Below, piece after piece: positions 1 through 53,281 of a stretch of DNA of 64,000 nucleotides. Source of the stretch: Takakia lepidozioides (lineage: Eukaryota; Plantae; Bryophyta); assembly GCA_030704615.1 (NCBI GenBank), contig CM060734.1, positions 61,070,001-61,134,000 on the forward strand. The letters run 5' to 3'. Under the pieces are notes generated by a model. That model made no database searches. It was given only the letters and a program-made list of their open reading frames with translations, and was not told the DNA's origin. How positions within the stretch are numbered: the stretch's first letter is position 1; each line of letters begins with the position of its first letter. Made by a program: the position numbers and the translations under genes.

Positions 1-396
1 CTCAGAGGAGTTTGAGAGCTCAACTATTGGGGTGGAAGTAGGGGTCTCCGTCTTCACGACGATATTCCTTTTCTCTTGAGAAACAGAACCAGCTGTTCCC
101 GGGGAGACATACGAACCACTGGACTGCCGCCGAGGAGCTCCCACGACCCTGTATCTTCCTGGAGGCACTCTCCACTGACTCACAAGAGAATTATCATCCG
201 GTTTCTGAAATGAGTACTTGATCAACTTCCCATGCACATCGTAGACCTTTTTTTCGAGGAAAACAGTGCCAATCTGGTACTCGAAACGCGTTGCCAGGAG
301 ATGCTCATGCGCAATTGCGTAACCATTGGAATCAGCATCCTTCGAGAAAGGGATAGGCTTCTCCGTAGAGTAAAACTCCGCTTCAGTCGAACCCAT
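1..396 (-). CDS. 5' part of an unknown ORF running off the left edge (MGSTEAEFYSTEKPIPF...)
   Basis: ATG at 396 on the minus strand, 132 codons with no stop before position 1 (so absent from the ORF track). Divergent from the gene at 1013. No domain recognised. Confidence 0.45.
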   Translation of the reverse strand, partial: MGSTEAEFYSTEKPIPFSKDADSNGYAIAHEHLLATRFEYQIGTVFLEKKVYDVHGKLIKYSFQKPDDNSLVSQWRVPPGRYRVVGAPRRQSSGSYVSPGTAGSVSQEKRNIVVKTETPTSTPIVELSNSSE

Positions 397-1355
397 GGTG
401 GAGGACGACTAATTCCGAGGTAGACGGAGCTCGAAAGTGGAGAGGCCCACAACTCCCGTGGATATCTTTCATCAATACATGACAGACAGTTAAAGGGTCC
501 TTGAAGAACAATTGTGTAAACAGTTGCTAAAACAGATGTGAAACAGTTACGTGCCTACCCACACCCAGTGCAAAAGACGGCTAAGCCGGAAAATCTGGGA
601 TATGTTATGTTTCCAGGCACGTGGGCCCAGACATTGCATTCATAGCACGGCTGCCAGAATGGGTGCAGAACCAATGAGAAGTTCTGAACCGCCGAAATGC
701 AAAAATCAACTTGCACATGTATGGACATCGAATCCAGGGTATGGCCATACGGACACAAGAGGTGACGGCGTCCAGTGCCAAATGCACAAATGTTTCTGTG
801 CTACGTGGACACGTGTGAGGTGAACCCATGCATAACCGTCGCAAGCGTTGCCCTGCCTGCATCCCCTCGCACAACATTTTTGGGCCCAGCTGACCCTCAT
901 TTTCAAGCTGGAGACTAGTAGGAGACTCAGTTCCCACCGAGAGAGCGGCAGGCATAGAAGGCAGTCTTTTTTTTTCACCTTAGCGCGAGAGAGGAAGAGG
1001 GCGAGAGAGAGAATGAGAGGTCGCAAGATCGAGTTGACGCTGCAAGAGATAACAGAGGAGAGTTCGGCCCTGGAAGCAGAACACATGACGGTGCAAGACC
1101 AGGTGGTCGGAGCTGCCGAAGGAGGGGATGAAATACCATCAGATAGCAACACAGAGGATATGGACACAGAGGAGCCCGACGCTGTTGCTAAGGAGCCCAC
1201 GCCAAAGGGGAAGAGTGTTGTTGAGAAGGAGGCGACTCCGAAGAGGAAGCAGGCTGCGCAGACCTCCATTGCCGCTGCAACCAAGGCTTCAGGGAGTGCA
1301 CCCCCGAAAGCACCGCAGGTTATGATCTTCCTTCTTGTATTCTGCTACAGTTTGA

Positions 1356-4300
1356 AGGGCATGAAATTGCGTGCACTGACGCATGCAATTTCATGCCCTG
1401 CATTATTGTCTTTTTCCACTTCAGAGTGGAGTGACGGACATCAACGTGGGCTACATAGCAAGGCCTTTGAGAGCACCTCCTGAAAATTGCGTGCGTCAAC
1501 GCACGCAGTTTCTGGAGGTGCTCTCAAAGCCACTTTCTGCACTCAGCATCTCTAAATGGAGCTATCAATAGAGGGAGATGGGCTGCATTATTCGTTTACT
1601 GATATCAGCTACAGAAATCTCTGAATGTCCCTAAAAGAAACCCCAGAAATTGCGTGCGTCAACGCACACAATTTCGGAGGGTGCTCTTAGGGACACGCAG
1701 AGCTCTAAACAGATCTGACGAGAAACTCTTCATCGCACCCTCCGAAACTGTGTGCGTTAACGCACGCAATTTCTGTGGGTTCTCTGAAGGACATTCTCCT
1801 GAGTATCGGTCTGTCATTTTTGAGATCAATGCACATGCGTATCTTGAAGTTGAAGAGAGGATGTACAGTCTGTAGGGGCTTCTGGAATGCGTACGTCAAC
1901 GCACTCAATTTCAGAGGGTGCTGTTATGGACATCCAGAGCTCTAAACAGATCTGAAAGGTCGAATGTGTGAGCACAAGAAGATCGTCTGAAATCCACGGG
2001 AGACACTTCAGAGAACCCACCGAAATTATGTGCATTGACACACGCAATCTCTGGGTTAGTACTTAAGTACAGTCTCTTGCGTATGGGTCTCTCATTTCTG
2101 AAAACAATGCACATGCATAGTCTGTAGAGGCATCAGAAATGCGTGGGTGTGTACCAGGTTTGTTGTAACAGGGGCGGTTTCAGTTCCCCTGCCACAAACA
2201 GTGGTATGTCATGACATGTCCGATTTGACTCCCAAACACATGAGGGAAATAACCGAGTTATTTCAGGAAAGACACTTACTTGTTCACGTCATGTATTGTT
2301 GTCAAAAGCGCAGTGATGTTTCCCTTGGGATCCAGCACCATGGAGACCAAACAATAGTGCCACTCCTCCTCAGTGCTATGATACCTCAATATCATGTTCT
2401 GCCAGGCTAGCAATCGGTGGTTGCCATCCCAGACATGGAACATCTTGCCTGAGAAAGCCTGTGTAACAAGCCTCTTGCAAATGCTTGATTCAAACTCCTC
2501 ATTGATACGTCGCCAAATTGGATCCCAGCCTCCAACAATGGTCTCATCTACTAAAACTTCCCTGCCATTGGCGTCGCCCAACGAGACGTAAAACACAGAT
2601 TGACCCTCTATGTAGCCATGGCAAAAATCCTGTTCCAGCTTTGCAATGTCATTTGTGAGTGCTGGTCGAACGAATGGCATGGAGATCAACCTGCACAGTG
2701 GGATCATTAATTTACCCCCAGGAACGCCCATGGCCTTGATGACTTGGGCAGAGTTCACTTTCGAGAACGACAACAGATCTTTTGGCATGTCCTGGTATGG
2801 CCTGCCATTGTCTTCCTCCTCTACAACAACAAGTTCGTGCTCCTCGTCTTCATCCATCTCCAGAGGAACACCTCTCTTTTTCTTCGCCTGCATTGAAATA
2901 GAAAAATTCTCCATGTAAAAGCAATGTCACAAATTGAGTGCGTTGATCCAAAATATTGGCCAAATGCCCCTCAGCACATTCAAGAGCATCCTCAGTCCAG
3001 AAACCTACGCGAAATGCCAGACCTCCAGAACTTTCATGAGCGCCTTTGTGAAACAGTTGAGAATGGCAGACCCTGCCTTTGGGCCTCAATTCTTGGATGA
3101 GGTGAGGAACCACTGGAACAACAATACGAAGCCAGAGATGACACAGGAAAAGCTGCATCGTTTGTCAACTGCAGTGGTGGATTCCGAGCAGAAAGATAAA
3201 TGGTTGGAGATTTGGAATTCTGACTCAACAGTGAAGGACATATATTGCTTCCCAAGGGGGGAAAGAGATGAAAATACTGGCCACATCAGGCCATTCAGCG
3301 ATCAAGTTTTCGATACATGGCTGCACAAAGCCACGCACTGGAGCCAGGTTATGTTGTGGACTGCCATATGTTGAATTTACAAAAGAATCTTCCCTGGTAT
3401 GGACTTTAATGTTTGTATTCTGTCTGTTCACAGATTGAAGCTCGTGCGAACCAGGTGCTGGAGAAGCATCTTCATGCTTACAAGATAACGATGACCTTGC
3501 CCGAAGATACTATGGAGGATTACTTGAGACAGTGGAAGGCGACAGCGTGGAGTAACTATTTCTTCAGAGAGTTCGCCAAGGAGGGGGGCATATCCCGGAC
3601 AAAAGAGTTTTGAGCTGCAGTTCCGAGCCGAGGGAGCCATGAAAATGGTCCTGTACAGGTGGGTCATTTGAACTAAGCAGGATCACCTTCTTCCTTTATA
3701 GCCCTCCACAATTGAGTGCGTCATCGCACACATTTTGGAGGGTTGGATCTCTGGACTGTTTTCCCTATGTCTCATTGAATGCAGGTTCATTTCTTGGAGA
3801 CCCGCTCCCTATCTGGTTTTTCATGTTATCAGTTCTGGCCACAAATCATGTAGTTTCTCATCCACTTTCTGATACTGTGCCTGCATTGTTTTGTAGGTAT
3901 ATCAAGAACGTTCTGATTCCTGGGAACAACCTAAGCAAGTACCCAGGCTTCATCGACTTGTGGGCTGACTCCTCCAACAGCCACACCATGTACACTGCAG
4001 CAATCCTCAGGGATTACGGTACATATCACCTCAAAGACTGCTGCTGGTATCTCGACATACCAAAATCAGATTGCCCATGGTATGAGTTGCAGACACGGAA
4101 CCAGAACGACAATGCCGAGTCCTTGGCTCCTCTAACAAACAGGGAACTGCATGACAGAAACCTACGAAACCTCGCTGAGAAGGAACCTGCAGCTACACAC
4201 ACTCCGGCGAGAGGGAAGGGGAAGGGAAAGGGCACAAAGGACAAAGGGAAGGAGAAGAGCGCCCAAGGGGATGCTGCAGTAGGTGTTGGTTCCCAGACCC

Positions 4301-4804
4301 CAATTGCAACCAAGGATCGCAAACGCAAGGGGAAGTTTGAGCCATACGACGCAATGGAACACCCATCCCGAATCAACCGAGAATGCAGATGCGAGCTTGT
4401 AAACGACTCATTCCTTGCCATGATGGAGACCAGGAAAGGTGGACTTCACTGCTGTAAAATTCCCAGGCGGTACCAGACATTCTCCCCACTGGCACTTGCC
4501 CAACCTGGAATGCATTTGACGAAAGGTACTGGCGGTGGGTCTTCTCTTTTTGCAAATTGTTTCTGTCGGATGGGGGGTTCTGGTTATGATTCAGTCCATC
4601 ACTACAAAATGTCGTCGGGAGATTTCAAGCTATCTGAAGGCCTCGGGGATGAAGATCATCGAAACGTGGAATGGAGTGAACAGCCTGTACTTGACAAAGG
4701 GTGACTGTCCGGGACAAATGGTAATCCTCCTTCCCTTTCCTTTTTCAATTTGTGTGCAATTCAGCCCCTCCGGAATTGAGTGCGTTGACGCACTCAATTC
4801 TGGA
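1356..4804. repeat. Dispersed array of ~30-bp palindromes (core GAAATTGCGTGCGT-NN-ACGCACGCAATTTC)
   Basis: Copies at about 1356-1399, 1465-1529, 1627-1694, 1735-1792, 1881-1914, 2014-2057, split 2134-2146/2931-2950, 3702-3742, 4769-4804; all lie in predicted introns. Confidence 0.9.
2144..2950 (-). other. Inverted segment carrying the ParB-like exon
   Basis: Exon and splice sites are on the minus strand while the flanking exons are on plus. TGG (2144-2146) / CCA (2948-2950) inverted microhomology; re-inversion gives in-frame NLVHT-QNIGQM. Confidence 0.8.
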
Positions 4805-6329
4805 TAAGGGAAATCGCTGTCATCTTTGTGGGATTTTGCATCATTTCTTATGTCATTCGTGATGTCTTTTTGAGCAGACTCGCCTTTTTGAAGTCATGTG
4901 CCTCATCAAGATTCGCCCGCCTTCCACTCCTGCATCAGTGAAGGAATTCAGGCTTCATGGGGGAGGTTGTTTTATCAACGACAGGTTTGATCTTGTGGTA
5001 GACGACATTCACTACAACTACGTCGATTCTAATGTGTGCTTGAGAAAGTCAAATTCCACACCATGGAGAGGGGCGAAGGAGAAGAGCCCAGCTTTTATTC
5101 AGACAATTATAGAGACATGCTCTCATCCGGGGTCGCGCATCGTGGACCTCACTCTTGGGACAGGTTAGACCCCCATCATTCTCTGTTGCAGATATTGTTA
5201 TATCTTGCTAACAGTATAGCGTCTTGCAGGAGCTTCGTACCATGCTTGCAAGGCGGGGGGCAGGCATTTGTTTGGTATGGAAGGGGATGCAGATATTTTC
5301 AATGACATCATTGCAGGCTTGCAAGGGCCAGCCCCTGCCGTCCTGGAACAGGAGGGTACAGTGCATGTGGATAACACCGAAGTGGATGAGAAAGACCTGG
5401 ACGATGATTTCGCATGTAAGTAAGTTGAAATTGTGTATGAATCTTAGTTCTCGAACAGAACCCCCCACCATTCCCTTTTCTTCTATGTTCGCTAATGCAT
5501 TGCGTTCACGTTGGTTTTCAGGATATTGGAAGCTATCCCTTTGCTCAATGTCAGTGTTTTCCAGTCTGACTTCTGGTGCAGCCCTCCACGTTTGTACATC
5601 CTGCCAGAGTACGCTGAGGCCATTGCTCGACATCAGTTGATGAACAAATCTCCCTCGTGTGCTCGGAAGCAGAAAAGGCACCTAGGAGCTCGGGTTTCGT
5701 GTCTGATAGTGCCACAGTTTCCGGGGATAGTTGTAGTGATTGAGACCATGCGTCAATGTAGTCCAGTTTTGGTTCGGGGCATATGGCAACTGCCAGACCT
5801 ATTGTGTTCCAACACATTTATCTAATACAATGCCTGCACACGCATGTGTGTTCCTGGTAATGTAGTTAAATGCTCGTTCCTCAAGTTCAAGGCTTGTATG
5901 CATTTGCAAATATGACTTCATTTTGTATTTATGTCTTCACTTAGTCATTTTGAGCACACGTTTTAGTTGCAAGCCTTATGGCTGCATTATGTATGCACTA
6001 TTGGCTTCAGCGCTAGATGAAGGGCACGACACTGATGCCTACAATTGGTTATGGGTCAAACAAGAACCTCGAACTCCTCATGCACAACTTTAATGGGTAT
6101 GCTTACAACTAATGAATAAGCTTGAAAATGTTGGTGCTCTATCGACAGATATTAGCACATTGTACCTCACTAGCAAGGCGACCAGGTCACATTGACAGTC
6201 CACAGCCACTTCAGTGTGGAGATATGATGCGTTCCTCCAGTATGGTACTGAAATGGCTCACTATGTGTCGACACTGAAGAGGAAAACAAAAGTGAAGCGT
6301 GCTGCACATGGAAAATGCTCCAGTAACCA

Positions 6330-9300
6330 GTGGGAAAATATCAAAGAATGGAATATATGCTTGGCATCTGCTGTGTTGTCTTATTCTACATAGGTTTCAT
6401 AGGTCGACCTTTCCCCATATGGCAGACATTGGTTAAATCCTATCATGTGCTTCATGAGGGATTCTCTCATTGCTCATTCATCCTCTCTCATTCATCCACT
6501 GGATTTCATCCACATTCATCCATAACTACTCATCCACATCCATCCTCATTCGCAGCGTGGCATCCACATTCACTGTCTATCATCCTCATTAATTCATCCA
6601 CAACCATTGTATATTGGGTCTCTGCAAACATAATCATTCAACAACATCGCCCACATATGTTCCCTTTGAGTCGAATGCGCAATTCCGCGGCTATGGGCCC
6701 CCTTCCACCTTTTCGGCCCTCGGTTATAGGTCGTTGCCTATGGAAATGACGTCAACCTGTCGTGACGTGGCATCTACCAAGCTGGCAGGGTGTGATGACG
6801 TGGAGTCAGACGCGGCCGCCTAGGTGGCAAGAATTGCTGATGTGGCATGAGCGTGACTGCGCTCACATGCTCACGTGCTCACGCTCATATGCTCACGCTT
6901 CAGCATCCCCCCTTTTCTTTGGGATGGATGTCTTCCTCTTCCCGAAGCACAGTCTCCGCCACCTTTTGTGCATCTGACTTCATTACTGTGAAGTTCAGAT
7001 CCTCCCGTTCCGATGCAGATGTGGCTGACTCCGACGCCACATACCCAGGGCCTTTCCTTAGCGTATCTCGTTGCTGTTGGGTCATCACTGCGTAGCTACC
7101 TTTTCCAGGGCTAGCTGTCGTGGTTGGAGTGGCTTCCGATTCACTCGCAATCCAATTTACTTGGTGTTGTGTCTCCTGAGGGTGCGTTGTATGATTGGGT
7201 TGTACGTTGGTCTGCTGTTGCTGAGGCGGCGCCGAGGTAGACGCTTGATGTCCTCCCTGCACCCTTACATCCTGAGAGGGAGACCACGTGTTAGAAGAAC
7301 CCTAGGCTATCTGAGCCTCAGGATTTGAATAAGCTGCTCGGGCAGCCTGTCCCTGAGCGGCATTGCCCCCTGAGTATGGTGGACCTGTCTGATCCGGCCT
7401 AGGTCATTGTGCTATCTACGTTGGGGTAGCAAAATACATGCTATGCTGTTGCGGTAGAGGGTTGGGTGGTTCAGTCGCATACTGATTCGGGAATGGGGCT
7501 CGTTGCCCTTCCAAATTCCTCTCTACTTGCTGGATGGTGGCAGGGGCCGGTCGGTCCACCTGCCTCTGGGAACATCTCTCCAAGGGATGGCCTCTTTGGC
7601 CGCAATGCATATCACTCCAATAGTATTATGTTGGGTGAGTGGTTCTGCCACATTTTTTACAACCTTTCCTGGATTGACTGAATTGTCATTTTGATCTATC
7701 CTGATAAGTCGGGTTTTGGCTTACCTACCTCTCCCAGGTGGGATAAGGTCAATGTTGAGCAGCATGCCCGGGACCGTCGCAGTTGGAGCACCATACCTTT
7801 GTCGGGTTGGCTACTAGAGCAGCTGCATCTCGATACCCCACGTAGCTGGTGATCTGCTGGCCGATAGAGCTCATGCGATCGCCCATTGTTTCGATGGTTT
7901 TGATGAGAGAGGTGACTTGCGCCTCCAAATGGCTTTCTCGTGAATCATACTGCCCAGTGGAATCTGCATACGAGTTAGTAGGGGCAGCATTCATATACTG
8001 TGGCACGGTCGGTGCTACTGCTGGTGTAGGGGACGTCGCGGCGTATGGCCGTGCTCCTCCTACATATGACGGCGTATAGTGTAGAGCGGGTTGGACCACC
8101 GCTAATGGCGTCGGCTCCTGCGTGGGCTCGATCGTAATGTATGATGGAAGTGCAAAGTCGGGCATCTTGGCCCATTATACCTGGCGATGCATGTTGTCGA
8201 ACTCCTTGCCGACTTGTATGGCATCTACCAGTGTTGCAGGTCTTTGCTACAAAACATGAAAGTGAGTGGTCTCTAGTAATCCACTCAGAAAACAATCCTT
8301 CAGTACCCCATCATCTAGGGGGTTAAAGGGTTTTGGAATCACATCAACTCCCAAAATCGCATTTCAAAGTCCGTTTACCTCCTCTGTGGGGCCTTGGCGG
8401 ATCCTGGCTAGTGCCATCAAGGCACTGGTGAACTGGTGGACCGCTCGAACATGATCTAAAAATGCGTCCCGAATTTGCTGTTAAGTTATGAATATACCTG
8501 GCGCCTGTTGCCAATACCAAGTGGACGCCCTACCCCTCATGGTCGTGGGAAACCATATCAACCAATAGGCATCGTTTAACGCTTCGTTAGAATAGCAACA
8601 CTGAATAAAGCTTTTCACATGATACTTTGGGTTTTCATGTGCTTCCCTGGAAAACCAAGGCAAATGCATGGGTAATGTAATGGGGGCAAGCCTACCGGGA
8701 CCACAATAGGTACCTCAGGAGGTCCTGGAACATGTGCCATAATTGACACTAACAACGGTGAAGGGCTCCTTGACCTGGCCGGTGGTGTATAAGGAGGACT
8801 AGATACAGGAGAAACCACTCGTGAACACTCGATCTTTGAAGAGCTGTCAGTGTTCCCTCCTTCCCACTCTATCTTACCCAAACTTCTAGTTTCTGAGTCT
8901 GATTGTGGACTCAATGCTGGGTTTTTCCCTAGCAGTTGATCTCTGACGGCTTCTCGAGCCAGTCTCCTTTGCAACCTAGTATCAAAGGATATGCTATCCA
9001 AGCTTGGGAGTGTGGCTCTTGATTCTGAGCTAGACATACACTCCTTGCTGTGCTGATGAGGATTCTCCTACCTCAGCCTGTACTAAAGGACTATATTACC
9101 TTGAACAACCATGTCAAGAATAAACGAGGTCAGATTTAAATGCCTTCCATGGAACCTTGGCGATGGAGGCACGTCAGTGTGCAACTTCCCATGAATTACC
9201 CAGTCTTCGGGTGGTCAGGACACGTTGCAGTACCTACACTCATCCAACCTGCGCACATAATGGGATGCCAGGAGCTGACATACGCGGCAATGAATAAAGA

Positions 9301-10090
9301 AGTCTACCTGCCACCGTAGATGTGCCACAAAAGAAGATCTGGGGTGCAATGCTCCTAGATAAATTCCAGGGCATGAACAATACGGCCAGTTGAGCCTGTC
9401 CTTACACCAATAGAAATGATCTGGTGCATTTGCTTCCGAGAGTCGCTCACACCAAACCGTTTCGTTAATCCACCCCTTCTTGATGGATTTTCGTTGAGCT
9501 AATCGCTCGATGTAAGCTGCTATGATAAGTCGAATCTCTGGCTCATGTTGCCAAAATCTGCTGCGAATCCTTTTGACCCTACCTTCAAAAATCATACCCA
9601 CTTTAGAAGTTCATGCAGAAAAGATTTTTATCACTGCAGGACACGAGGTGGATGACACTGGTAAATTCCAAAGGGTTACATTGCTTGTGCCGATTGGCAG
9701 ACATGTTAAAAAAAATTGAAAACATACTTTGCAGCTGCGAGATCTCTACCGATCTTCGAAGGCAGGTTACCTAGACTGCTGCTGTCTCTTCCTCGTCTAT
9801 TTCCACTAGTGACTCTGGTACTGAGGTACAAGGAGAGCTGCTAACCGAGGAAATAGCATGCACTAACTTTAATGGAATGAGAGGAAGGAAACTTGTGGGA
9901 ATTTCCCGTGCAAAGTAAAATGGCGGCGGTCGTTCTGGATCCGCAATGACGCCTTTGGGAGCCACTAAAGGACGTCATTCAATCCAAGTGATGTCGTGTA
10001 TGGTGGGCGCCACGTCCAACTGCCCGTTGGTGATCAATTCGATGATTAGTGCTGCCTCACTCTCACTGCGACTGTTGTAAAATCTGGGTG
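6330..10090 (-). mobile_element. Degenerate Ty3/Gypsy-like LTR retroelement with gag only
   Basis: Retrotransposon gag motif WFPTTMRGRASTWY (8481-8669), zinc knuckles CSNCDGPGHAAQH (~7750) and CMHCGQRGHPLERC (~7570-7615), purine tract AAAGAAAAGGGGGGATGC then TG (LTR start ~6902). Both outer boundaries are approximate. Confidence 0.7.
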
Positions 10091-10094
10091 GACA

Positions 10095-11187
10095 AATGTC
10101 CTGGATGGAATTGGGAATCCATTAGCATGGATTTCATTGTGGCTTTGCCCAGGACCAGAAATGGCCATGACAGTATCATGGTGGTTGTAGATAGGCTATC
10201 TAAGATAGCTCATTTGATACCTACAAGGATAAGTGCTACGGCATCGGATCATGTTGCATCCCTGTACATAAAAGAGATATTCAGGATTCATGGTCTGCCT
10301 CGTGAGATTATTTGTGACAAGGATTCAAAGTTTACAAGTCAGTTTTGGATTGACTTGTTCAAGAAATTGGGAACCAAAGTGAGGCTAAGTACAACCTTTC
10401 ACCTAGAAACAGATGCTCAGACAGAAAGAACCAACCGTACAATAGAGGATATGTTGAGAATGTACGTTGGTGAGAGGCAATCTTCTTGGGAACAGTTTCT
10501 GGACTTAGTGGAATTTGCCTATAACAAGCATTTCCACAGTGCCATTGGCATGAGTCCATTCGAAGCTTTATATGGACGAGATTGCTTAGCTCCTGCTTCG
10601 CTTATTGCACCACCATCAAATGTGCAGAGTGTGAATGATAGAATCAGAGAGATCAACTCTCCTAGATCTGGTGAAGCGTAGTATGCAAGCTACCCAAGAA
10701 CAGGCCAAGTTCTTTGCTGACAAGCACAGGACTTTTCGTGAATTTGCTATTGATGATATAGTGTTCTTAAAAGTTACACCTAAGAGAAGCAATCTAACAC
10801 TTTGCAAGTGTTACAAGCTATCACCAAGGTTTTGTGGCCCATTCAAGGCTCTAAAACGCCATGGCACAGTGGCTTATGAGTTAGATCTGCCTCCACCATG
10901 GAAGATTCAAAAAACTTTCCATGTCAGCCTTCTCCGGAAGTATATGTCATACCCATCGCACATCTTGTCCACATTGCCTCAACCTACGAACGATGGTCAG
11001 CTGATGGTTGAACCCGAAAAGATTCTAGAAACGCGAGTAAAGCACCTACGCAACCGTTCTTGGAAAGAACATTTAATTAAGTGGTTGCATTACCCAGGCT
11101 ACTTGGGAGAAAGAGAATGAACTAACATTGAATTACCCCTCATTTTCTATCATTGAGGACAATGACCTGCCTTTGGGAGGGGGAGCT
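10095..11187 (+). mobile_element. Chromovirus (Gypsy) integrase + chromodomain fragment
   Basis: WESISMDFIVALPRT...IVVVDRLSK-type rve core, DAQTERTNRTIEDMLR, KLSPRFCGPF (GPF/Y) and EPEKILETR...HLIKW chromodomain; frameshift ~10640; polypurine tract GGGAGGGGGAG at ~11175-11186. Confidence 0.92.
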
Positions 11188-16769: not shown

Positions 16770-18350
16770 ATCTTGCAACCAAATTTAGTGCTGACCACAA
16801 CCGATTGTTGAAGGCATCCAGCTGGGAAGCAGTTGTCACGGACATAGCCCAGAGGAACTTACCAGGAGTAAATACCAGAAATTACCAAGTTACCACGTTA
16901 CCACGTTATCAAAAGTTACCGTGATTTATCACAAGTTACCATTAGTTACCAAGTTATCGGAAATTTACCAAATTATCGAGAGTAACTTGGGAAACTGCTC
17001 AGGAAGCTTCATTTGGAGGAAATTTCTCCATCAAGATACCTCATTTGTTTAAGGAAACTTCTCCATCAAGAAACCTCTTTTGTTTAAGGAAACTTCTTCA
17101 TCAAGAAACCTTTGTTTAACCTTGGAAATTTCTCCATCAAGAAATCTCCATTGGGGAAGCTTTTTAGGGAACTTCCTAGTAGCCAGTATATATAGGAGGC
17201 GAGACTGGACACTCTTCAGTCTCGCCAACACAAGTTCAAGCTACTTTTGTTCCCAGTCCCAGTACTTCAGTCCAATTTCCAGTACTTTAGTCCAGTTTCC
17301 AGTATTTGATACTCAGTCCAGTTTCTAGCATTTTAGTATTCGAGTCGAGTTCCAGTATCTTGTACTCTTGTCCATTGTTATAAAGATCATCTTGATTCAT
17401 GTTTATCCATCATGCATTCGGCCATGCCGACCTTGACTTCTTGTCTAGTCTTGTACCTCTAGTCTAATATCTTATTTGTGTTCAGTCATGTTCATAACAA
17501 TGGACAAGAGTACAAGATACTGGAACTCAACTCGAATACTGGAATGTTGGAAACTGGACTGGGTTCCCAGATACTCAATGGAGAAGTTTTCAAAGTTAAA
17601 CAGAGGTTTCTTGATGAAGAAGTTTCCTTAAACAAAAAAGGTTTCTTGATGGAGAAGTTTCCTTAAACAAAGAAGGTATCTTGATGGAGAAGTTTCCTCC
17701 AAATGATGCTTCCTGAAGAGTTTCCCAAGTTACTCTCGCTAATTTGGTAAACTCCCGGTAATTTGATAATCAATAGTAATTTGTGGTAAATCATGGTAGA
17801 TCATGATAAATCACGATAAATCATATTAACTTTTGGTAACTTGGTAACTTGATAATTTCTGATATTTACTCCTGATAAATTCCTCTGGGCTATGTCCGTG
17901 ACAGCAGTAATGATAAAATCCCCTGAAACAACCCCGGGTATAGTTATAGGATCTTGATCATAAATCTGATCAGCAGGTAAAACTAAACTATCCCCAATGG
18001 ACTGACCAACTGCATCCAGCATAAGGGTCTGTGCCCTACCAATTGAAGGTCCATAGGTTATGTCAGGTCTGGCAGAACACATTCTTGGCACACAATGCCA
18101 GCGCTCAATGAGAATAGTACGAGCTGCCTTGTTGACATGTAAAAACACGGCAACGCGGGTTTGGCCGTTGCTATTCCTTAGCGCTGACTCAAAGACTCCG
18201 AAACACCGATTTCGACCAGAAAGGATGGCCAAGCAATGGGATCAAGACGAGTAGTAGGCATGTATGAAATATCCGGCTCTTTAGACCTACGAGGGTTCAC
18301 ATATCTACACGTACCGGTAAGAAATAAAGAACTCCGCGCATGCTTCGTCA
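16770..18350 (-). pseudogene. Uma2-like PD-(D/E)XK nuclease remnant, interrupted by the foldback element
   Basis: SKEPDISYMP...WPSFLVEIGVSESLSQ, then frameshifted NSNGQTRVAVFLHV...ILIERW; the frame resumes across the insertion (GDFIITA-SQLDAFNNRLWSAL). Confidence 0.6.
16834..17903. mobile_element. 1070-bp foldback element with long terminal inverted repeats, TGT..ACA ends, 5-bp TSD GCAGT
   Basis: TGTCACGGACATAGCCCAGAGGAA at 16834 and its reverse complement ending at 17903; GCAGT at 16829-16833 and 17904-17908; arms meet at ~17381/17494. Confidence 0.9.
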
Positions 18351-21398: not shown

Positions 21399-23940
21399 CT
21401 ACTCTGAAGATGAAGGACTGGAGGCCATTCCTTGAAGCAAACTTTCGAGCTTAATGTTGACGCACTCCAGCAGGTGTATTTGCTGCAACCGGGTTCGCTC
21501 CATGGTCGTACCCCATTTCTCCATGTGCTCAACATGCTGCTGAAGGATACCCCTCATCACCTGTTCACGGTTTAGATAGATGGAACACCAACCAAGTTTG
21601 TGGAGACGCTTTATGGCTTTATGTTGGGACTACAGATAAGACGTACATTGGACAAGAACACATCATAGCAGGAGATCTGAAAGAAAGGAAGTCGATTCTG
21701 TGGTTCTCTGGGGGCATCCGAAGTGCATAAAGACTATTGGAATTACCCAAAGTAGGATATCAACTTGAAGAAATTTCAATGACCCCTGCCAGCTTGAGAG
21801 TTGGAAGTAACAGGAAAATTGCTAGGCACAGTCACTTGCAAGGCAGTCAGACCAGGAGGTGATGCGGTGATTGTGTCAAGAACATGATAATTCAATTTGG
21901 TGCCAGTTAAGAAGCAATGTTTACCTCTCCCTGCTGGCGGACAGATTCTTCCCTCTCCTCGCAAGCTTTGAGCTGTGCACATAATAGCACTTGTGTGTCT
22001 CTCAGGAGCTGGAATGCATGAACCTTTTTCAGCCGTTTGGCAAGGGGCAGCCCTTGTCTGCAGGGTTGTTCTTTACTGGCCAGGATTGTCTCTCCAGAGG
22101 GATCCTCCATTTGCTTGGTTTGAATACTGAATGGGCTTCCCCCATCCCCAGCCGCACCTGAACTGCTCATGCAATTTAAGTCCAGGCTTTGTATCCTGAC
22201 TCCATGTTGGGGTGGCAAGCCCTTCTCTTGGCTGTCTACTACATTGAGATTCGCCCACTGTCCATTTTCCAGCCCCATCCCTTCCTCCCTCCATGATCTG
22301 CCTCTTTGCCTCCCATGCTTTTTGTCTCTCTCAGGGCCAGCAAGCAGATTCCCAACCTTATTTTCAGGTACGTTGTTGCCTCTTGAAACCTGCTGTTGTG
22401 TTAACACTTCTACATTTGTGACTGCCTTTCCATCATTGATGACAGACCTCTCTTCCACATTATTTTCTGCTTCCTGGGGGGACACTAGATCCCCTTGGGA
22501 AGTCTCACCAGTCAATTGCCTCCTCCTTGATGGCAAGCAAACTTCCTGTCCTCTCTCTCTTTTCCCAATAAATCCCTCCTCTGTCTCTTCCAGGCACCCT
22601 TCTTCCTCCTGTGTTCCCTCCTCAATGTCGGACTTGCAAAGCTCCAGAATCATTGGTGAAATTTTGGGGTTCTGATTTCCAGTTTTGCTGCCAAAATCTT
22701 GCCAAATTTCATAGAAACGGGGCTTCAGGAGCTCACGGCCAACAGAGCTGGGATCTGAACTCTCTTTCTTTTTGGACAGCATGGTGTACTTGGCACACTC
22801 TCTGCGAACCTTATAGTACTTGCTCTGGCATTGATGCTTGGTAAACTCCCTGCCAAATTTGTCATTCATCAAGCACAGAATTGGTCCCCATTTATTGTGA
22901 TACTTGCTTTTGCCACCGGTCTCAGAGTAAAGTTCTGCATGGATGGCTTCATAACTCTCAAACAAAAACCTCACCATGTCTTCGTTCCATTTGCCAAATT
23001 CAACTGTCATTTCCTCCCCTTCCAGGATACTTTCTCGAGAGGAACAATCAGCTGCAGCCTGGGGAGCTGCATTTGCATGAGGCTTTCTCTGTCCTTCCAC
23101 TCCTGCATCCTCTGTTGTTATTCCTGATCTACAATGTTGTCTCTCTCCTATTTCACCCTTGAACTCAGTGGAAAAAGTATTATTCTTCCCCTCGTCATTT
23201 GGTTCCCGAATTCCCCTGGAACCATTCTCTGAAACATACATTGTGTCGCCAGCAGCAGCAGCAATATCCTGGCGGTCTTGCACGGTCCTGGGCTGCTGGG
23301 GGCCCTGAGAAACAAAACAATCTGCTTCTGCTAGTGCACCTTTCTCTTTGGTGGCAGTGCTTGCAACGGAAGGCACTTTATCACTGGATTTGTTCAGAGG
23401 AGGACGCGGCAGCAACAGACTGCGACCCCGGCTGGCTTTGGCGCCGCTCCCTGCCATTCTATCCGTGTTAGCAAGACCACCAAGGTCTCGACTTGCTTGG
23501 TGCAAACCGGCATAGTACCCTCGTGGCTGAAAGCCTGCTTTTGGGGGAAATCCATGGAAGACACGAGGATTCCATCCAGGACCGGGTCCGTAGCCACAGA
23601 GAGCGAACGTTGAGGGGGCGGGAGGACCAGACATTTCTGTCCCGCTAGTCGGTGATTTCGCTGGGGAAGCAGGAGGGATAGCGGGAGGATGATATTGAGC
23701 AGCGACGGACGGAGGAGGGTCAGGGGAGGGGTATAAGCCCGGAGTGAAAGGAGGGAGGTATGGAACTGGTGTGAAGGCAGTAGAATGACTTCCATATGAA
23801 TGCCAGGCATAATGCGCAGCTGGGGAAATGTACGGAGTCCTTGCGATCGGGAAGAATTGGGCAGGTTTGCTTGCTGTGGTCGTCAATCTAGTGGTTGCCA
23901 CAGCCCCTGGACGATTAAGTGCGGGGGAGGACGATGCCAT
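21399..23940 (-). CDS. Myb/SANT-like (trihelix-type) DNA-binding protein with C-terminal coiled coil
   Basis: 677-aa ORF containing KWNEDMVRFL...KWGPI...FTKHQCQSKY...PRFYE; predicted intron 21924-21561 joins a last exon 21560-21399 (VMRGILQQHVEHMEKW...SE*). Confidence 0.75.
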
Positions 23941-32206: not shown

Positions 32207-35200
32207 ATGAAGCGCACAAGGGAAGAGAGCGGCTCAGGGCCGCAGAGCAAGCGGGCAGCTGGATTTCGGGGAGAGACATCGGAGGCAGCTGGGCAGCGGC
32301 TCACAACTGAGGATGCCTTTACTTACTTGAAAGCCGTCAAAGATAAATTCGAGGATGACAAGGACAAGTACGACGAGTTTCTGGAAGTGATGAAAGAATT
32401 CAAGGCACAAAAAATTGATACAAATGGTGTGATCGCCAGAGTGAAGGAGCTGTTCAAGGGACACCGAGCCCTGATACTTGGTTTCAACGCCTTTCTTCCC
32501 AACGGCTATGAAATCACTTTGCCACTGGAGGAGGACAAGAAGCAGCCGGTTGAGTTCAACCAGGCAATCAATTATGTGAACAAGATCAAGGCACGCTTTC
32601 AGAGTGATGAGCAGGTGTATAAGGCATTCTTGGAGATTCTTAACTTGTATCGCAAAGGAAAGAAGAACATCAATGAAGTTTACCAGGAGGTAGCCACACT
32701 CTTCCAAAGACATTCAGATCTTCTCCAAGAATTCACTTACTTCCTGCCGGAGTCCACAGGTCCTCCTGTGTCAACTGTTCCTCGCTCTCCAGCCACACCT
32801 GTGAATCAGAGTGCATGTAAAGAGGGAAAATCCTCTAGAGCTGCCATGGGCCATCATAATAAAAAAAGTGACGCAAAGAGGGAAAAGTTTGCAGCTGTCC
32901 ATGATGAAAGGCATGATGGCTCAGGTGGACACCGTGAGCCAGACCCTCAGCGGTCTAGCATTGGGATAGAAAAGGAGCGCAAGAAGGGGGACAAAGAAAA
33001 AGAAAAGAAGCATAATGGGGAGGGGAAGGAATGGGAGAGGGAGAAAATTCACACAGAACGGACTAGGGAAAAGGATTGGGATGCCATGCAAAGGTTGCCA
33101 AATAAGCGCAAATCTGCTCGGCGGGCTGATGAACTCATCCGCAAGCAAGCTCAGGCAGGCGAAGGTGAAGCATTTGCATTTCTGGCTGCAATACCTTCAG
33201 TGGACAATGAGAAGCTTATAGCAAGTGGTACAAGCTATGCTTTTTTTGATAAGGTCAAATCAAGGTTACGCGACCATGATACTTACCAAGAGTTTATCCA
33301 GTGCCTTAACATCTTTAGCCAGGAAATTATTAGCCGTTGGTCGAGTTGCAAAGCCTGGTGCAAAGCCTGGTGAGTGACATTTTGGGAAACCATGCAGACC
33401 TTATGGAAGGCTTCAATGAGTTTCTCTCACACTGCGAAAACGTTGAGGGTTATTTGGCAGGGGTGTTTAGTAACAGAAATTTGGGCGAGTTTGGGGAAGA
33501 AATGTTGGTGAAGCCAAAGATGGAGGATTACAAGGAAAGGGACAGGGACAAGGAAAAGGATGGGGAAAGAGAGAGGGAGAGGGAAAGGGACCGTAACAGA
33601 GACAGGGACAAAGAGCGAGAGAGAGAGAAGTTGAGCACCCATCCTCCTAAGGAGGGACTGCATAAAGTTTCTATAATTCCTAACAAGGACAAGTACATCA
33701 AAAAGCCCGTTTCAGAGCTTGATCTGTCCAATTGCGAGCTCTGCACTCCCAGTTATCGTCTGCTACCAAAGCACTATCCGAGACCAATAGCCACTCATCG
33801 CACAGCTTTGGGGAATTCCGTGCTGAATGACAGCTGGGTGTCTGTTACATCGGGCAGTGAGGACTACTCCTTCACGCACATGCGCAAGAATGAGTATGAG
33901 GAAAGCCTGTTTCGTTGCGAAGATGACCGGTTTGAACTTGACATGCTGTTGGAGTCTACTGTGTGCACAGCAAAGCTCGTGGGGGAATATGTTCCCAAGC
34001 TTCAACATACGGGCAGCCCGCAAGAGTTTCCATTTCGTGTAAGTGAACACCTTTCAGCCATCAATTTGAGGTGCATTGAGCGCATATATGGGGATCATGG
34101 GGTGGACATCATTGATCTGCTTAGGAGGAACCCTTCCTCAGCCTTGCCCGTGATTCACAGCCGCCTCAAGCAGAAACAAGAGGAATGGTCTACTTGCCGC
34201 ATGGACATGAACAAGGTCTGGGCTGAAGTGTATAATAAAAATTATCACAAGGCTCTTGATCACCGCAGTTTCTACTTTAGACAGCAAGACAAGAGAAGCT
34301 TGAGCACAAAGGGACTGTTGGCAGAAATCAAAGAGATAAACAAAAAGAAAAGAGGGGAAAATGAGACGATGCTAGCTGTTGCAGCAGGGAGCTGCAGGTT
34401 ATCGTCTCCAGAGTTACGGTTTGAGTATGCAGATGCTACAATTCATGAAGATTTGTATCAGATCCTCAAGCACTCATCTGAGGATGTTTGCACTACGATG
34501 GAGCAGTCAGACAAGGTAATGCAAATATGGACAAATTTCTTGGAACCCATGTTTGGGATACAACCTCGGTGTCGTGGCGTGGAGGACATGGAGGAGGCTG
34601 CCAAGATGAAAGGATTAGAGCCCAAAAGGAGTGGTTCAATTGTAAGGGAAAATGGTGCTATGGAGGGTGCTGCAGCACTCGGGTCAGCTACGGCCATGAG
34701 TGGTGGATTGATGGATGAGTTTGCAACAGCTACTAGAAATCTTGGTACTGTTGAGAAGACTGGTGCAGGGGGGCACATTATGATGAAAGGGGAGGCTGCC
34801 ATTACAACAGGTGGTGGGGAGACCAAGCAGGATGAAATAGTATATGCTCCCTTTGGGAGTGAGGAAACCCTTGGATCAGACAAATTGCAGGCCTTGGTCA
34901 TTCAAAATAATACAGTTCCTGTGAGGCCATATACAAGCATGGCTGACAGTAGAACAATGGTTGCTGCTACACCAGGGGTAGGAGGGACCCAAGTTGTAGT
35001 AGGTGGAACGCCTCTTGCCCTAACGTCTCTGCATGAATCTGGCTGCATTGGCACAGACGGTTCAGTTGCAAAGCAAAGACTTTTGGCACCTGGGGCACAG
35101 GAAGCTGATTGGAGGTCAAATGGTGCTGGGGTAGAGAGCAAGGCTGTGGGGTCAAATCTGGAGGCTTCTCCAGCAAAGGAGGTGGAGGGGAGTGGGATCC

Positions 35201-36613
35201 TTGCATGGATGGAGAGGAAAGAAGGAGAGCTTTCGCCCTCCCCAGAATTAGAGGACACACACAAGTCTAGTCCTGCAGGTGACTTAAAGACATATGGATC
35301 CAATCGAGCATTGAAAGAGAATTGCACAGACAAAAAATGACTAATGAAGATGGAAGGCGTGCTGAAAGAGATCTGACACTGATGATGAAGGGGAAGAAAG
35401 TGTTAAAAAGTCCAGTGAAGATAGCGACAATGCATCAGAAGCTGGGCTAGAGGTGTCTGTGAGTGAGTCGGGTGAGGAACAATCTGAGCACGAGGAAGAG
35501 GAGGAGGAGGAGGAAGAGGAGCAAGAAGGCAAAGCCGAGAGTGAAGGTGAGGCAGAAGGCATAGCGGGTGTTTATGACAGGGAAGGGGATGGTTACTCTT
35601 TGCTGGGGTCACCTGATTGTTCATTCTCAGTGTGTAAGCCCCTGGCTGTGCACACAGCTTCAGCAGAGAGCAACACTGTAGATCCTCATAGCAGAAAGGA
35701 TGGTCGAATTTTCTATGGGAACGATCTATTTTACCTCCTTTTCAGGTTCCATCAGACACTGTATGAGCGTATACTCTCTTCCAAGTCAAATGCATTCGCT
35801 GCAGAACAGAAGTGGAAAGCGATGAAGGACACAGCACGTCCCAATCTGTATGCAAGGTTCATGCAGGTGCTGTATGGCCTGCTTGATGGATCATTGGACA
35901 ACAAAAAATTTGAGGATGAGTGTCGTGCCATCATTGTTACTCAATCATATGTCCTGTTCACCCTGGACAAACTCATCTTCAAACTTAGTAAACAGTTGCA
36001 AGCTGCCTCATCTGATGATGTGGCAGGTAAGCTGTTGGCACTTCACTCCTCCGAAAAGGCTGGGGAGGATGTTGATCTGGTCTACCATGCTAATATCTGT
36101 GTTCTACTTCACGACGAGAATATCTATCGAATCGAGCACAGATTGGTCTCCAGTGAATTGCTCATCCAGCTCATGGAAGGGGGGCCAGAGAAGGTAGATG
36201 TTCCAGGGAATGCCTTGGAGTTCTCTTTTCAGGCTTACTTGGATAAATTTCTGCTTTCAGTGCCAACTGCGAAAGATCCTCGTGTCTTTTTGGCACGCAA
36301 CAAGAGACTGCATTATGCAGAGGACGATTCTGCAATAAAGAATGCAAATGCAGAGGTGCGGGATTGTGAATGGTTTGGAGTACAAAATATCTTGCCACAC
36401 GTGCGTCTAGAGTGTTTAAAGAATCAACTTGATCTGCTGCGGTTCGGAGGATCTGTTTGTGCGGCGCGGCGAAGACGTGCCTGCATCAACCACACTGCAT
36501 CTGATAGAAAGGAGGGTCAACGACGCCATGCCTTCAGTGAATGGATTGACAAACAAATTGGTGCTATCAAAGACAGGTTAGGTGTTGGCTATATCCTACT
36601 TAACCCCCCTTGA
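32207..36613 (+). pseudogene. SIN3: Intronless SIN3-like (PAH1-3, HDAC-interacting domain, Sin3 C-terminal domain) copy with frameshifts
   Basis: LTTEDAFTYLKAVK (PAH1), VEFNQAINYVNKIK (PAH2), [37 protein letters not shown]; frame breaks near 33337, 35335-35380 and 36360. Confidence 0.9.
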
Positions 36614-38953: not shown

Positions 38954-40008
38954 ATTGGGGAAGGGGCTGTCGGCGAGTGTGGGAGTGTTGAGGAAGATTG
39001 TGTTGACTTACTTATGTGGGGATATGGATCACTCTCAGCTTCACAGTGATCGTGTTCAACAAGTACATCTTAGATCGGAAGATGTACAACTGGCCTTACC
39101 CGATCAGCCTCACCTAGACACATGGCATTCTGTTTCACGCTCGCCTTTCTGCTTGTCCGCGTCTTCAAGTTCGTGGAGCCTGTGGGGATGTCCAGAGAGC
39201 TTTACATGTCGTCGTGTTCCCCATTGGAGCCCTCTATTCTCTGTCCCTGTGGTTGTCCAATTCGGCCTACATATATCTCTCTGTCTCCTTCATTCAGATG
39301 CTGAAGGCTCTAATGCCGGTGGCGGTCTACTCGACTGGTGTCCTGCTCAAGAAGGAGATGTTCAAGTCGCAGACGATGGCCAATATGGTTGGGATATCCC
39401 TGGGAGTAGGGGTCGCGGCATACGGTGAGGCCCAGTTTAATGGCTGGTGGGTAATGTTGCAACTGGGAGCAGTGGCATTTGAAGCTATGCGCTTGGTATT
39501 GATCCAGATTCTTCTGACCTCGAAAGGCATCTCTCTCAACCCTATCACGTCTCTCTACTACGTTGCTCCTTGCTGTTTTTTGTTCCTCTCGATCCCTTGG
39601 ATTCTGGTCGAGTATCCCGTTCTGAGGGAAACCTCGTCGTTCAAGTTGGATTACCTTGTATTTGGTACAAATTCTGCCTGCGCTTTTGCGCTTAACCTCG
39701 CAGTTTTCCTTCTAGTGGGAAAAAGTTCAGCTTTGACGATGAATGTGGCGGGCGTGGTGAAAGATTGGTTGCTCATTGCTTTTTCATGGTCTTTCATCAA
39801 GGACAAGGTCACCACGATCAACCTGATTGGTTATGGTGTTGCCTTCGTTGGCGTATGCTTCTACAACCACGCCAACTTGCAGGCACTCAAAGCCAAAGAA
39901 GTTCAGAAGAAAGTGCAGGCTGACGAGGAGGCTGACCTTCTTATGGAACACAAGCATGATAGACAAGAGGACGATAGCCTCCAGCCAGGACGAAAAAATG
40001 ATGCTTAG
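38954..40008 (+). pseudogene. TPT/nucleotide-sugar transporter (UAfT-like) with frameshifts in the 5' third
   Basis: [59 protein letters not shown]; probable start ATGGGG now ATTGGGG; breaks near 39011, 39115 and 39213. Confidence 0.88.
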
Positions 40009-48400: not shown

Positions 48401-48813
48401 CGTCCCCTTTCCTTTCAAGGAAAAAAAAAACAATAGGAATAATGTAAAACTTAATACAAGCCTGCCATTGGCTTGCCGGTTGTGTGGGCTCCTCTGACAA
48501 ACCCAGTGTCAAATCTTCCCCACACCCTCTTATAGTCTGCACTGGATAAACTTAAGAAAATTTTACTCCCCTACACTAGCAAATGGTAAGTGTTATTTTT
48601 TAACAAATGCTTACTTCCCTCTTCATTGATTCCCCCCTAATAAATGTTAAGTGCACCATAAAGGCAACGGCATATGCTCTAGCTAGCCTCAGATAAGCTC
48701 CATAAGTTAGCTCTAGCTAGGTTAAGATACAATTACACTCTGCAACATAACCAAGCATAGGATTAAAAGGTAATCATAAGGTAATATTTATGTAATTAGA
48801 AGCTAATACAATA

Positions 48814-51800: not shown

Positions 51801-51949
51801 GTCTCATCAACAATCTTTGGGTGTGTGGTGATTGCCACACCTCCACCAAATTCAGCTCAAAGATTTTTGGCCGAGCAATTGTTGTACGGGAAGCTAACCG
51901 CTTTCATCACTTTGAAGATGGGGTATGTTCTTGTGGGGATTACTGGTGA
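48814..51949 (+). pseudogene. PLS-PPR-E-DYW pseudogene mosaic with OSB-type PDF motif halves
   Basis: [51 protein letters not shown]; WHEFFKDPSRWRDNRNRK (49356-49409), KLWSEYFSDPS (~51053-51085). Many stops, frameshifts and deletions. Confidence 0.9.
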
Positions 51950-53281
51950 AAAGTTGTTATTGTGGAAAGGTGCATCCTGTGTACATTCCCCCGTTTCTTA
52001 TTTGACCACAATGACATTCGTGCCAACAGTTGAAATCCTACTGTTTCCATGACGTATCATGCTTCTATATGGTTCGTTCTCAACGCTTTGGAAATTTTAT
52101 GAATGCAACAGAGTGGATATCCATATTTCTTTCAAAGTGGGTATCCAACTTCCATCTCAAACCTTGCATGCATGCTTTCCTTCCATTTGGGATGGGAATG
52201 GTATTACGCTTTTATGGTTTCATGATACCATTCATGACTAATGGAATCATTCCCTTGTACAGGCACTATATGCACATATGCACTCATACTTTCTGCATGT
52301 GCTTTCATTCATAGTATGATAACTTCTAACCTTCATCCATGACGGTTCATTCATCCCAAAGATACAGTGGCTCTCCAACTTGCATGTAAAAGCAATCATG
52401 CATGCATCCATCCCATGATTTTATCATATGACAATCGCAGGCCCTAGAGCAGCAGTCCAAGCCATGAGCAGCCCCACGTATATTGTTCTTAAGCATCTTC
52501 GCATCCTTATGTCACATGACCCTGTAGGGAAATTCTGGCACTTGCAACTAATTGGACATATGTAAGCACACATGAAGTTGCATTGACTCCACTTGGGTTG
52601 CAAATGCACTTGGAAATGGTAGGGTGAGTGCGTTCCAGAAATGAGGGGCCCTGTGAGAGACGCAAGCCGAGTGTCAAGTGAAGATGTCATTGACCATATT
52701 AAGGAAAAATTCTCTTCGGTAACCACTTAGCCTTAAATAATTCTATAATTAGCATATTGTCGATCGAGTGGGTGCTTTCAAAGTGACAAGAATCTCAACA
52801 AGTTTGTCGTAGCTCCTCCATAAGGGGAGGCAAGAGAAAGTTTTTCATCTTCAGATAGAGCACAAGGAAGATGATAACGAATAGATGATTTGGCATTAGA
52901 GCACTGAGGGAGCTACACTAGCAAACATTATTTTGAAGTAATCCACAACAACTAAGTTAGATATTGTTCTCGAATTGGAGGATACAATTGCATAAGTGGT
53001 TCTCTCAGGTAGTGACAAAGACATAGCATGCATATCATGAACACAAACATGATATCTCAGTGGAAGCGAGGAAAACCAAACATGCTACCTTTTCGTCAGA
53101 TAATTCAGTTGAAAACCTTTTCGATGTACATTGCGTGGAGAACTTATGGGTTTGATGTGAGCTTCTGCGTCTGGGCGTCCGATTTCCGTTAGGGAATATT
53201 CAGCGCATCAGGTTTGCAAATTGTCTCCTTTCGTATGGATTGGAGGAGGAAGTGAAAAGTCTGGGAATCTAGGGGTTGGAT

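Follow-up and report, generated by a model that had tools for sequence, protein, structure and literature searches.

What is a gene that joins a ParB-like domain to a prokaryote-type DNA methyltransferase (MTase) doing in a bryophyte genome? The question is raised by positions 1013-5825 of a 64,000-nucleotide (nt) stretch of Takakia lepidozioides CM060734.1 (the window, to which all window coordinates below refer), described in an earlier note as a dead copy of a horizontally acquired, probably mobile-element-borne DNA modification module. Further analysis showed that this is a dead, spliced bryophyte gene encoding a ParB/Srx fold, a helical middle region, and a beta-class amino-methyltransferase fold. 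A Mutator-like DNA transposon (MULE) carries it as an accessory gene, head-to-head with the gene for the transposase. The earlier note had missed the divergent transposase exon at 1-396, the palindromes, and the likely element end at ~6912, and the transposase and palindrome arrays change the functional reading of the gene.

A fusion protein borne by a Mutator-like transposon

The exons between 1013 and 5825 sum to ~1,050 codons, and their borders are GT..AG throughout except at the lesions (Table 1). The protein motifs quoted in the earlier note were all found at the positions it gave. A Pfam search of the window pieces detected neither the ParB nor the MTase domain, and the domain assignments are based on structure and profile searches. 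First, the ParB exon is predicted to adopt the fold of the ParB/Srx superfamily. Its AlphaFold model (predicted local distance difference test score, 87) gave eight VIA structure matches at Z ≥ 5, including PadC and KorB (Z of 7.2), SerK (6.8), sulfiredoxin (Srx; 6.4), a ParB-N domain, and SbnI. The scores were middling and the top ranks consistent; the best matches had a root mean square deviation of 3.0 to 3.3 over 93 to 94 residues. Foldseek ranked Noc, Srx, and ParB at the top, yet with E values above 0.02. A nucleotide-pocket motif, G-x-H/R-R with an upstream R and a terminal N, is present in the family alignment, where the pocket residues are conserved in 58/66 (R), 60/66 (G), 66/66 (N), 60/66 (H), 57/66 (R), and 58/64 (terminal N) of the sequences. 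The assignment of these residues to the pocket follows established ParB motifs. A PDB profile search with the ParB alignment had eL24 as its sole match, which was judged spurious. There were 515 relatives of the exon at E ≤ 1e-3; the named ones came from Riccia sorocarpa, Adiantum nelumboides, and A. capillus-veneris, and many more were in environmental contigs, which we take to be largely from peat-moss samples. Among viral contigs, no sequence-level relative of the ParB part was found.

Second, the C-terminal domain is predicted to be a beta-class amino-MTase with the order motif IV, target recognition domain, motif I and a seven-stranded Rossmann-like fold. Since the window copy is without motif IV, the fold was modeled on P0153, a 1,207-amino-acid (aa) protein of Riccia sorocarpa. 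As had been proposed, this part modeled as a Rossmann-type amino-MTase: Foldseek matched CcrM (E value of 7e-11), and M1.HpyAVI, M.BceJIV, MboIIA, and N4CMT structures were also matched. The MTase sequence profile matched M1.HpyAVI (E value of 5.5e-4), PHROG DNA methyltransferases matched the P0153 domain with E values down to 2e-7, and the window exon at 4878-5163 had the Atlas feature N6_N4_Mtase in 26/30 matches. The earlier note had allowed that the ParB and MTase parts might turn out to be separate genes. In full-length annotated relatives such as P0153, they are fused in one chain, which agrees with its proposal of a single spliced protein with ParB/Srx first and the amino-MTase second. 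The full plan comprises a disordered N terminus, the ParB/Srx nucleotide-binding domain, a helical region of ~350 aa, a basic linker, and the MTase fold with an eroded motif IV. Such proteins appear in databases as "hypothetical" or "trimethylguanosine synthase" because both domains fall below Pfam thresholds; the latter UniRef label, attached to several members including P0153 and P0167, is unsupported by the fold evidence.

The claim that the gene is borne by a mobile element held up, and the element is a MULE. The window open reading frame (ORF) at 396-1 matched the ORF that lies immediately upstream of the transposase core of locus L089 (31% identity; pairwise E value of 6e-9), with a Smith-Waterman score of 81 compared to a maximum of 47 in 1,000 shuffles. 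Its identity came through L089; a homologue search with the window ORF itself came back blank. A transposase was found upstream on the opposite strand in 9 of the 25 loci that have at least 5 kb of upstream sequence: L002 and L093 of Riccia, L003 and L092 of Adiantum, and the contigs L033, L065, L076, L089, and L090. The linkage thus extends over Riccia, both Adiantum species, and moss-like contigs. Two other Riccia elements, L004 and L005, have kept the terminal word and lost the transposase, and most of the remaining loci without transposase are decayed. By Atlas features the transposase resembles MULE and ZSWIM RNaseH-like proteins, and it has a SWIM finger (E value of 0.0019); it is divergent, and the Pfam MULE profile gave no match to it. 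A complete Riccia element of 13.5 kb, L002:2362-15849, has imperfect terminal inverted repeats (TIRs) and a 10-bp target site duplication (TSD, a direct repeat), and L004 is flanked by a 9-bp TSD. In the window, the element probably ends at ~6912, just after captured host fragments; its left end, and with it the TSD, falls beyond the window.

Could the gene be passive Pack-MULE cargo, captured by chance and without a role for the element? The element does capture host fragments, such as that of eL32, and many copies are decayed. However, liverwort, fern, and moss-like sequences share the arrangement, both domains appear to be under purifying selection, at least 28 diverged relatives of P0153 are found in Riccia sorocarpa itself, and no single-copy host donor was seen. 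Conservation therefore largely refutes this explanation, which we regard as highly improbable. The substitution pattern of the MTase domain, in particular, indicates that it is under purifying selection. The proportion of nonsynonymous differences was 0.25 to 0.45 compared to 0.62 to 0.83 for synonymous differences, which were at or near saturation, and identity between two Riccia subfamilies was 58 to 62% in the MTase domain compared to 31 to 34% in the linker.

An altered motif IV and a probable phage-type ancestry

The earlier note had framed the gene as a likely writer of N4-methylcytosine (4mC) or N6-methyladenine (6mA) comparable to DN4MT1 and N4CMT, and had held that 4mC versus 6mA could not be called. 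The second point does not stand, since the relatives supply motif IV, which reads D-hydrophobic-P-x. Among 43 aligned rows, in which some genes are counted twice, position 1 was D in 40 and S in none, position 2 was hydrophobic and never P, and position 3 was P in 41. Position 4 was mostly T, S, E, or D, with an acidic residue in the moss-like members, and was aromatic in a single Adiantum gene (DVPF). The motif departs from the canonical (D/N/S)-P-P-(Y/F/W); neither SPPY nor DPPY occurred among the 43 rows. Position 2 without proline was probably inherited from an enzyme of the DLPY type, because DLPYG of a cyanophage methylase aligns on the family's DLPTG, and the real change would then be the loss of the aromatic residue. 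That aromatic residue stacks on the target base, and METTL14, in which the motif is eroded to EPPL, is the noncatalytic partner in its complex (PMC7544214). By sequence, motif I appears eroded as well. Its variants DLTLGTG, DLTASTG, and DFAGGWG (DLTxxTG and DFAGGWG types) keep the D, the last G, and the downstream acidic residue, and the first G varies.

Because there is no S-type motif IV, all but one gene have lost the aromatic residue, and motif I appears eroded, 4mC writing by the family is unlikely, and any catalysis is doubtful. The earlier view of the gene as a likely writer of 4mC or 6mA was not upheld. The motif (no SPPY) and the transposon context both spoke against a host 4mC writer related to DN4MT1, and that reading was rejected. 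A different possibility is that the protein is an active amino-methyltransferase, with N6-adenine a likelier target than N4-cytosine given the D-type motif, and that it modifies the element that encodes it, on or close to the palindromes described below, the mark shielding the element from silencing or licensing transposition. In its favor are the intact beta-class fold with CcrM, M1.HpyAVI, and M.BceJIV as nearest matches, the D and P kept in motif IV, the acidic residue kept after motif I, the phage DLPYG alignment, the DVPF gene, and the precedent of transposons with active DNMTs (PMC5890265). However, nearly all members have T, S, E, or D where the aromatic residue belongs, motif I appears eroded, and METTL14, with its eroded EPPL, is a noncatalytic subunit. 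We consider such an enzyme unlikely, though deserving of serious weight.

Where did the gene come from? Because of the fold, the motif, and the architecture, we infer a horizontal origin, in which the gene descends from a phage or prophage ParB-MTase fusion of the DLPY type and was then colonized by introns. Phage ParB-terminase loci include fusions of ParB_N with N6_N4_Mtase (Iyer et al., PMC4738411), which have the same order, ParB and then beta-class MTase, as the transposon gene. In Atlas, the two shapes closest to the MTase model were mostly viral ParB_N + N6_N4_Mtase clusters (TM of 0.64 and 0.58). The prokaryote- or phage-type ancestry proposed in the earlier note is supported by the fold, the profile match to M1.HpyAVI, these shapes, and the DLPY alignment. 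Unlike the phage fusions, the transposon protein is ~1,100 to 1,200 aa long, has a large helical insert, introns, and eroded motifs, and resides inside a eukaryotic DDE transposon. A prokaryote-derived beta-class amino-MTase fold is likewise found in eukaryotes in MpDN4MT1a/b of Marchantia and N4CMT of bdelloids (bioRxiv 2021.02.12.428880; PMC8885841). However, MpDN4MT1 is an active 4mC host gene with TSPPY (bioRxiv 2021.02.12.428880), whose source makes no mention of ParB, whereas in the present family S is absent from position 1 and the gene is carried by a transposon. Methyltransferase folds also occur in retrotransposons with DNMTs (PMC5890265) and in DIRS1, whose inactive MTase domain (PMC4738411) is a precedent for eroded catalysis. 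Those are retroelements with C5 or PCIF1-type domains; here a DNA transposon has a separate beta-class gene. A survey of eukaryotic amino-MTases placed ParB-linked clades in haptophytes, chlorophytes, and chytrids alone and noted that land plants have few enzymes of this kind (PMC4738411).

Palindrome arrays and a possible self-recognition system

The introns of the window gene contain eight intact 26-bp palindromes and a ninth copy split by an inversion, compared to none in the other 57 kb of the window and at most one in Markov-resampled controls. A strict count gave 17 to 23 palindromes per locus compared to ≤1 in resampled controls. Riccia elements have up to ~30 copies of their own palindrome variants, all confined to the element; the copies occupy the stretch between the two genes, an intron, and the downstream part. 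When the palindromes were searched across subfamilies, the table was almost diagonal, each motif having been drawn from its own locus. Locus L093, taken up later as a test of the prediction, had both a transposase and an array. In L091 (4250-4875 and 7397-8710), a distinct palindrome occurs 14 to 18 times, partly as 85-bp tandem repeats between ParB-MTase exons. Palindrome arrays are common, not universal, among the elements.

This arrangement resembles that of VANDAL elements (PMC5735166), which are also MULEs with an accessory gene and in which short motifs specific to each subfamily are repeated in introns and intergenic DNA. VANC binds these motifs and causes hypomethylation that spreads (PMC5735166), and its targets expand as tandem repeats, as do the L091 palindromes. 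The two systems differ in that VANC targets are asymmetric 8- to 9-mers, whereas the ParB-MTase elements have long palindromes, TIRs, and an unrelated protein; the full-length relatives had no match to VANC-associated Pfam families. By analogy, we tentatively favor, at somewhat less than an even chance, a VANC-like self-recognition and antisilencing factor built from a phage-type ParB-MTase. The protein, as a dimer, would recognize the palindromes of its own subfamily as parS-like loading sites, and the ParB domain would act as a nucleotide switch that enables spreading over the 10- to 14-kb element. The MTase fold would be kept mainly for dimerization and for binding of DNA and S-adenosylmethionine (SAM) rather than for efficient methyl transfer. 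Cognate copies would thereby be protected or activated, in a sequence-specific way, against host 5-methylcytosine (5mC) silencing, as VANDAL copies are by VANC.

Several observations weigh against this proposal. First, the near-invariant D and P of motif IV fit retained catalysis. Second, the Riccia palindromes have a common CCRGCG-N5-CGCYGG core and are hence variants rather than wholly private motifs. Third, the apparently well-preserved loci L001, L006, L089, and L092 showed no clear palindrome array. Finally, the transposase could be the palindrome binder instead, and a MULE transposase can itself activate cognate copies sequence specifically (bioRxiv 10.64898/2026.08.24.746577). The palindromes might then be transposase sites or by-products of array formation, and the ParB-MTase a MURB-like cofactor of transposition (in DNA bridging, target capture, or handling of excised DNA) with no sequence-specific effect on chromatin. 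The constant head-to-head linkage with the transposase, the loci without arrays, and the zinc-finger-like region of the transposase are consistent with such a cofactor, as is the finding that fungal Starships carry DUF3723 proteins as conserved cargo; these ParB-fold proteins were the nearest Atlas features. However, the arrays lie in accessory-gene introns, kilobases from the element ends, and Riccia subfamilies have the terminal (TIR) word in common despite their different internal palindromes, which is consistent with a separate binder for each. A cofactor of this kind thus seems rather improbable to us.

A stronger form of the self-recognition proposal is that the transposon adopted a ParB-type nucleotide-gated sliding clamp, which would load at parS-like palindromes and spread along chromatin, the MTase, possibly with altered chemistry, marking or unsilencing cognate copies in bryophytes and ferns. 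This remains doubtful. The bacterial CTP clamps ParB/parS, Noc, and KorB have the same fold and pocket motifs and palindromic sites repeated in cis; unlike them, the transposon protein is fused to an MTase fold and no ParA partner was seen, and clamp behavior is suggested by analogy. In Starship DUF3723, a ParB-like fold is likewise a conserved cargo of a large eukaryotic transposon; however, the element class is different, an MTase fusion is not shown there, and the kinship is at the fold level only. A MULE accessory gene with cognate motifs is a known kind of gene, and ParB and MTase parts are apparently unreported in that role. A survey of MULE diversity lists mudrB, vanB/vanC, PMD, and SET among accessory ORFs, and "methyl" is absent from its main text (PMC6446971). 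No description of a ParB-MTase transposon family was found in the literature searched, whose coverage did not extend to subscription journals and Repbase.

The family makes up a transposon accessory system that seems not to have been described before; it spans liverworts, ferns, and probably mosses and is made of prokaryote-type parts. It could serve as a second, independent system for the open question posed by VANC, namely, how one protein recognizes a whole 10-kb element and acts along all of it while its targets change quickly. ParB loading and spreading is an obvious candidate mechanism, and several subfamilies supply matched sets of protein and palindromes. In seed-free plants, the system might also give rise to 6mA or to other signals distinct from 5mC. 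If the model is true, it would offer a programmable epigenetic tool, and if a ParB clamp works on plant chromatin, the system would be categorically new. Although the window copy is dead, intact-looking Riccia relatives make functional tests practical.

Lesions of the window copy and its surroundings

The inversion, deletions, and two frameshifts described in this section (Table 1) agree with the claim that the window copy is dead. L001, a metagenome contig, holds a relative that is ~50% identical; its introns sit at the positions known from the window gene, and its exons, including the ParB exon, are all open and follow one another in order on a single strand. The inverted block is thereby borne out, and the inversion is specific to the window copy. 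The breakpoint left palindrome halves at ~2134-2145 and ~2927-2944, and so clean a cut through a palindrome, at the cost of a few bases, is consistent with a real rearrangement rather than an assembly artifact; among the contigs of the sequencing runs, none was shown to span either junction. A tblastn comparison with L001 showed that ~70 aa and one intron are missing at ~3020 as an in-frame deletion. The frameshifts are a gain of 1 nt at 3610 and a loss of 1 nt at 4573, and other copies in the DNA runs have neither. The deletion at ~3020 and the two frameshifts had not been listed in the earlier note. The suspected deletion of motif IV was also confirmed, as the window copy resumes at ~4464, just past D-x-P-x-G of the relatives. 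A shifted-frame VDFTAVKFPGG at ~4440 was rejected as a surviving motif IV, because it starts at a GT donor and the alignment with other copies does not begin until 4464. Contigs of low-coverage DNA runs covered every bin at identities from <90% to >99%, and the family is therefore multicopy in the organism. Some related copy is probably transcribed and spliced, because one contig of a run guessed to be RNA (RNA-guess contig; ~92% identity) joins two MTase exons by removing the intron 4721-4877 exactly at GT..AG. A small candidate exon may start at 1425.

Table 1. Features of the transposon in the window
Feature	Position	Strand	Basis
First exon of MULE-like transposase gene, divergent from ParB-MTase gene; remainder left of window	1..396	-	Homology to L089 ORF
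Exon 1, acidic/basic low-complexity N terminus	1013..1318	+	ATG, GT donor; RNA-guess contig over 967-1286
Six intronic palindromes	1365, 1485, 1648, 1746, 1885, 2024 (1365..2049)		Consensus AATTGCGTGCGT-CA-ACGCACGCAATT
Inverted block; breakpoint cuts one palindrome	~2146..2945	-	Collinear relative L001, junctions
5' part of post-ParB exon, severed by inversion	2146..2188	-	L001 comparison, splice borders
ParB/Srx-fold exon (VRP ... WDGNHR ... N), predicted	2280..2887	-	AlphaFold model, structure matches, 515 relatives
Helical middle region	2946..3347	+	tblastn against L001
Helical middle exon with +1 frameshift at 3610	3434..3658	+	L001, other copies, splice borders
Intronic palindrome	3710..3735		Palindrome sequence
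End of helical region, basic linker, start of MTase domain	3897..4438	+	L001, splice borders
Intron stump and deletion junction; start of motif IV exon lost	4439..4463	+	L001; other copies diverge before 4464-4476
MTase strands after motif IV; -1 frameshift at 4573	4464..4720	+	L001, other copies, splice borders
Intronic palindrome within intron 4721-4877	4774..4799		Palindrome sequence; intron spliced out in RNA-guess contig of a related copy
MTase exon with SAM-binding motif I (VDLTLGTG)	4878..5163	+	N6_N4_Mtase features, L001
End of MTase domain (FGMEGD acidic residue) and acidic tail	5230..5419	+	L001, splice borders
Probable last exon, Y-x-L-P-x-Y-A motif common to relatives	5522..5825	+	L001, relatives, splice borders
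Captured eL32 ribosomal protein fragment, Pack-MULE-like cargo	6017..6109	+	phmmer E value of 3.8e-5; highly covered in RNA-guess run
Probable element terminus, GCTCAC repeats ending in C run	6847..6912		Like L001 end and G-run ends of Riccia elements

Captured host fragments lie at 5960-6560, where short stretches at ~6240-6310 and ~6365-6460 match well-covered RNA-guess contigs. Rfam gave no match in window 1-7500. Additional ORFs are present near the ends of Riccia elements (L002:2755-3876, L002:15072-15791, L005:5254-5760, and L005:14470-15045). The second and fourth of these have in common an unannotated motif of the "RLDLEGMYF" type and look like conserved accessory genes.

Immediately to the right of the element end, a Gypsy-like long terminal repeat (LTR) retrotransposon remnant with an rve match occupies 7283-11120. 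It is followed by a 1.07-kb foldback element at 16834-17903 with nested inverted arms that are 88 to 93% complementary (resembling a miniature inverted-repeat transposable element or a foldback element) and by a 677-aa ORF on the minus strand at 21907-23940, which has a possible Myb/SANT-like stretch by eye and no Pfam match. An intron-free SIN3-like corepressor in three ORFs (PAH, Sin3_corepress, and Sin3a_C) at 32207-36613 is probably a frameshifted retrocopy. A sugar-phosphate transporter is found at 39214-40008, with the best named relatives in Sphagnum (84%), Marchantia paleacea (82%), and Calypogeia (81%), indicative of a bryophyte host. Two unannotated ORFs at 57671-59620, one with a CPFC motif and the other with a 15-bp Gln/Thr/Pro repeat, are possibly part of another transposon. 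Finally, a decayed PPR-DYW gene cluster extends over 48800-55700 and 60500-63500, with a multikilobase inverted duplication whose arms are up to 97% complementary.

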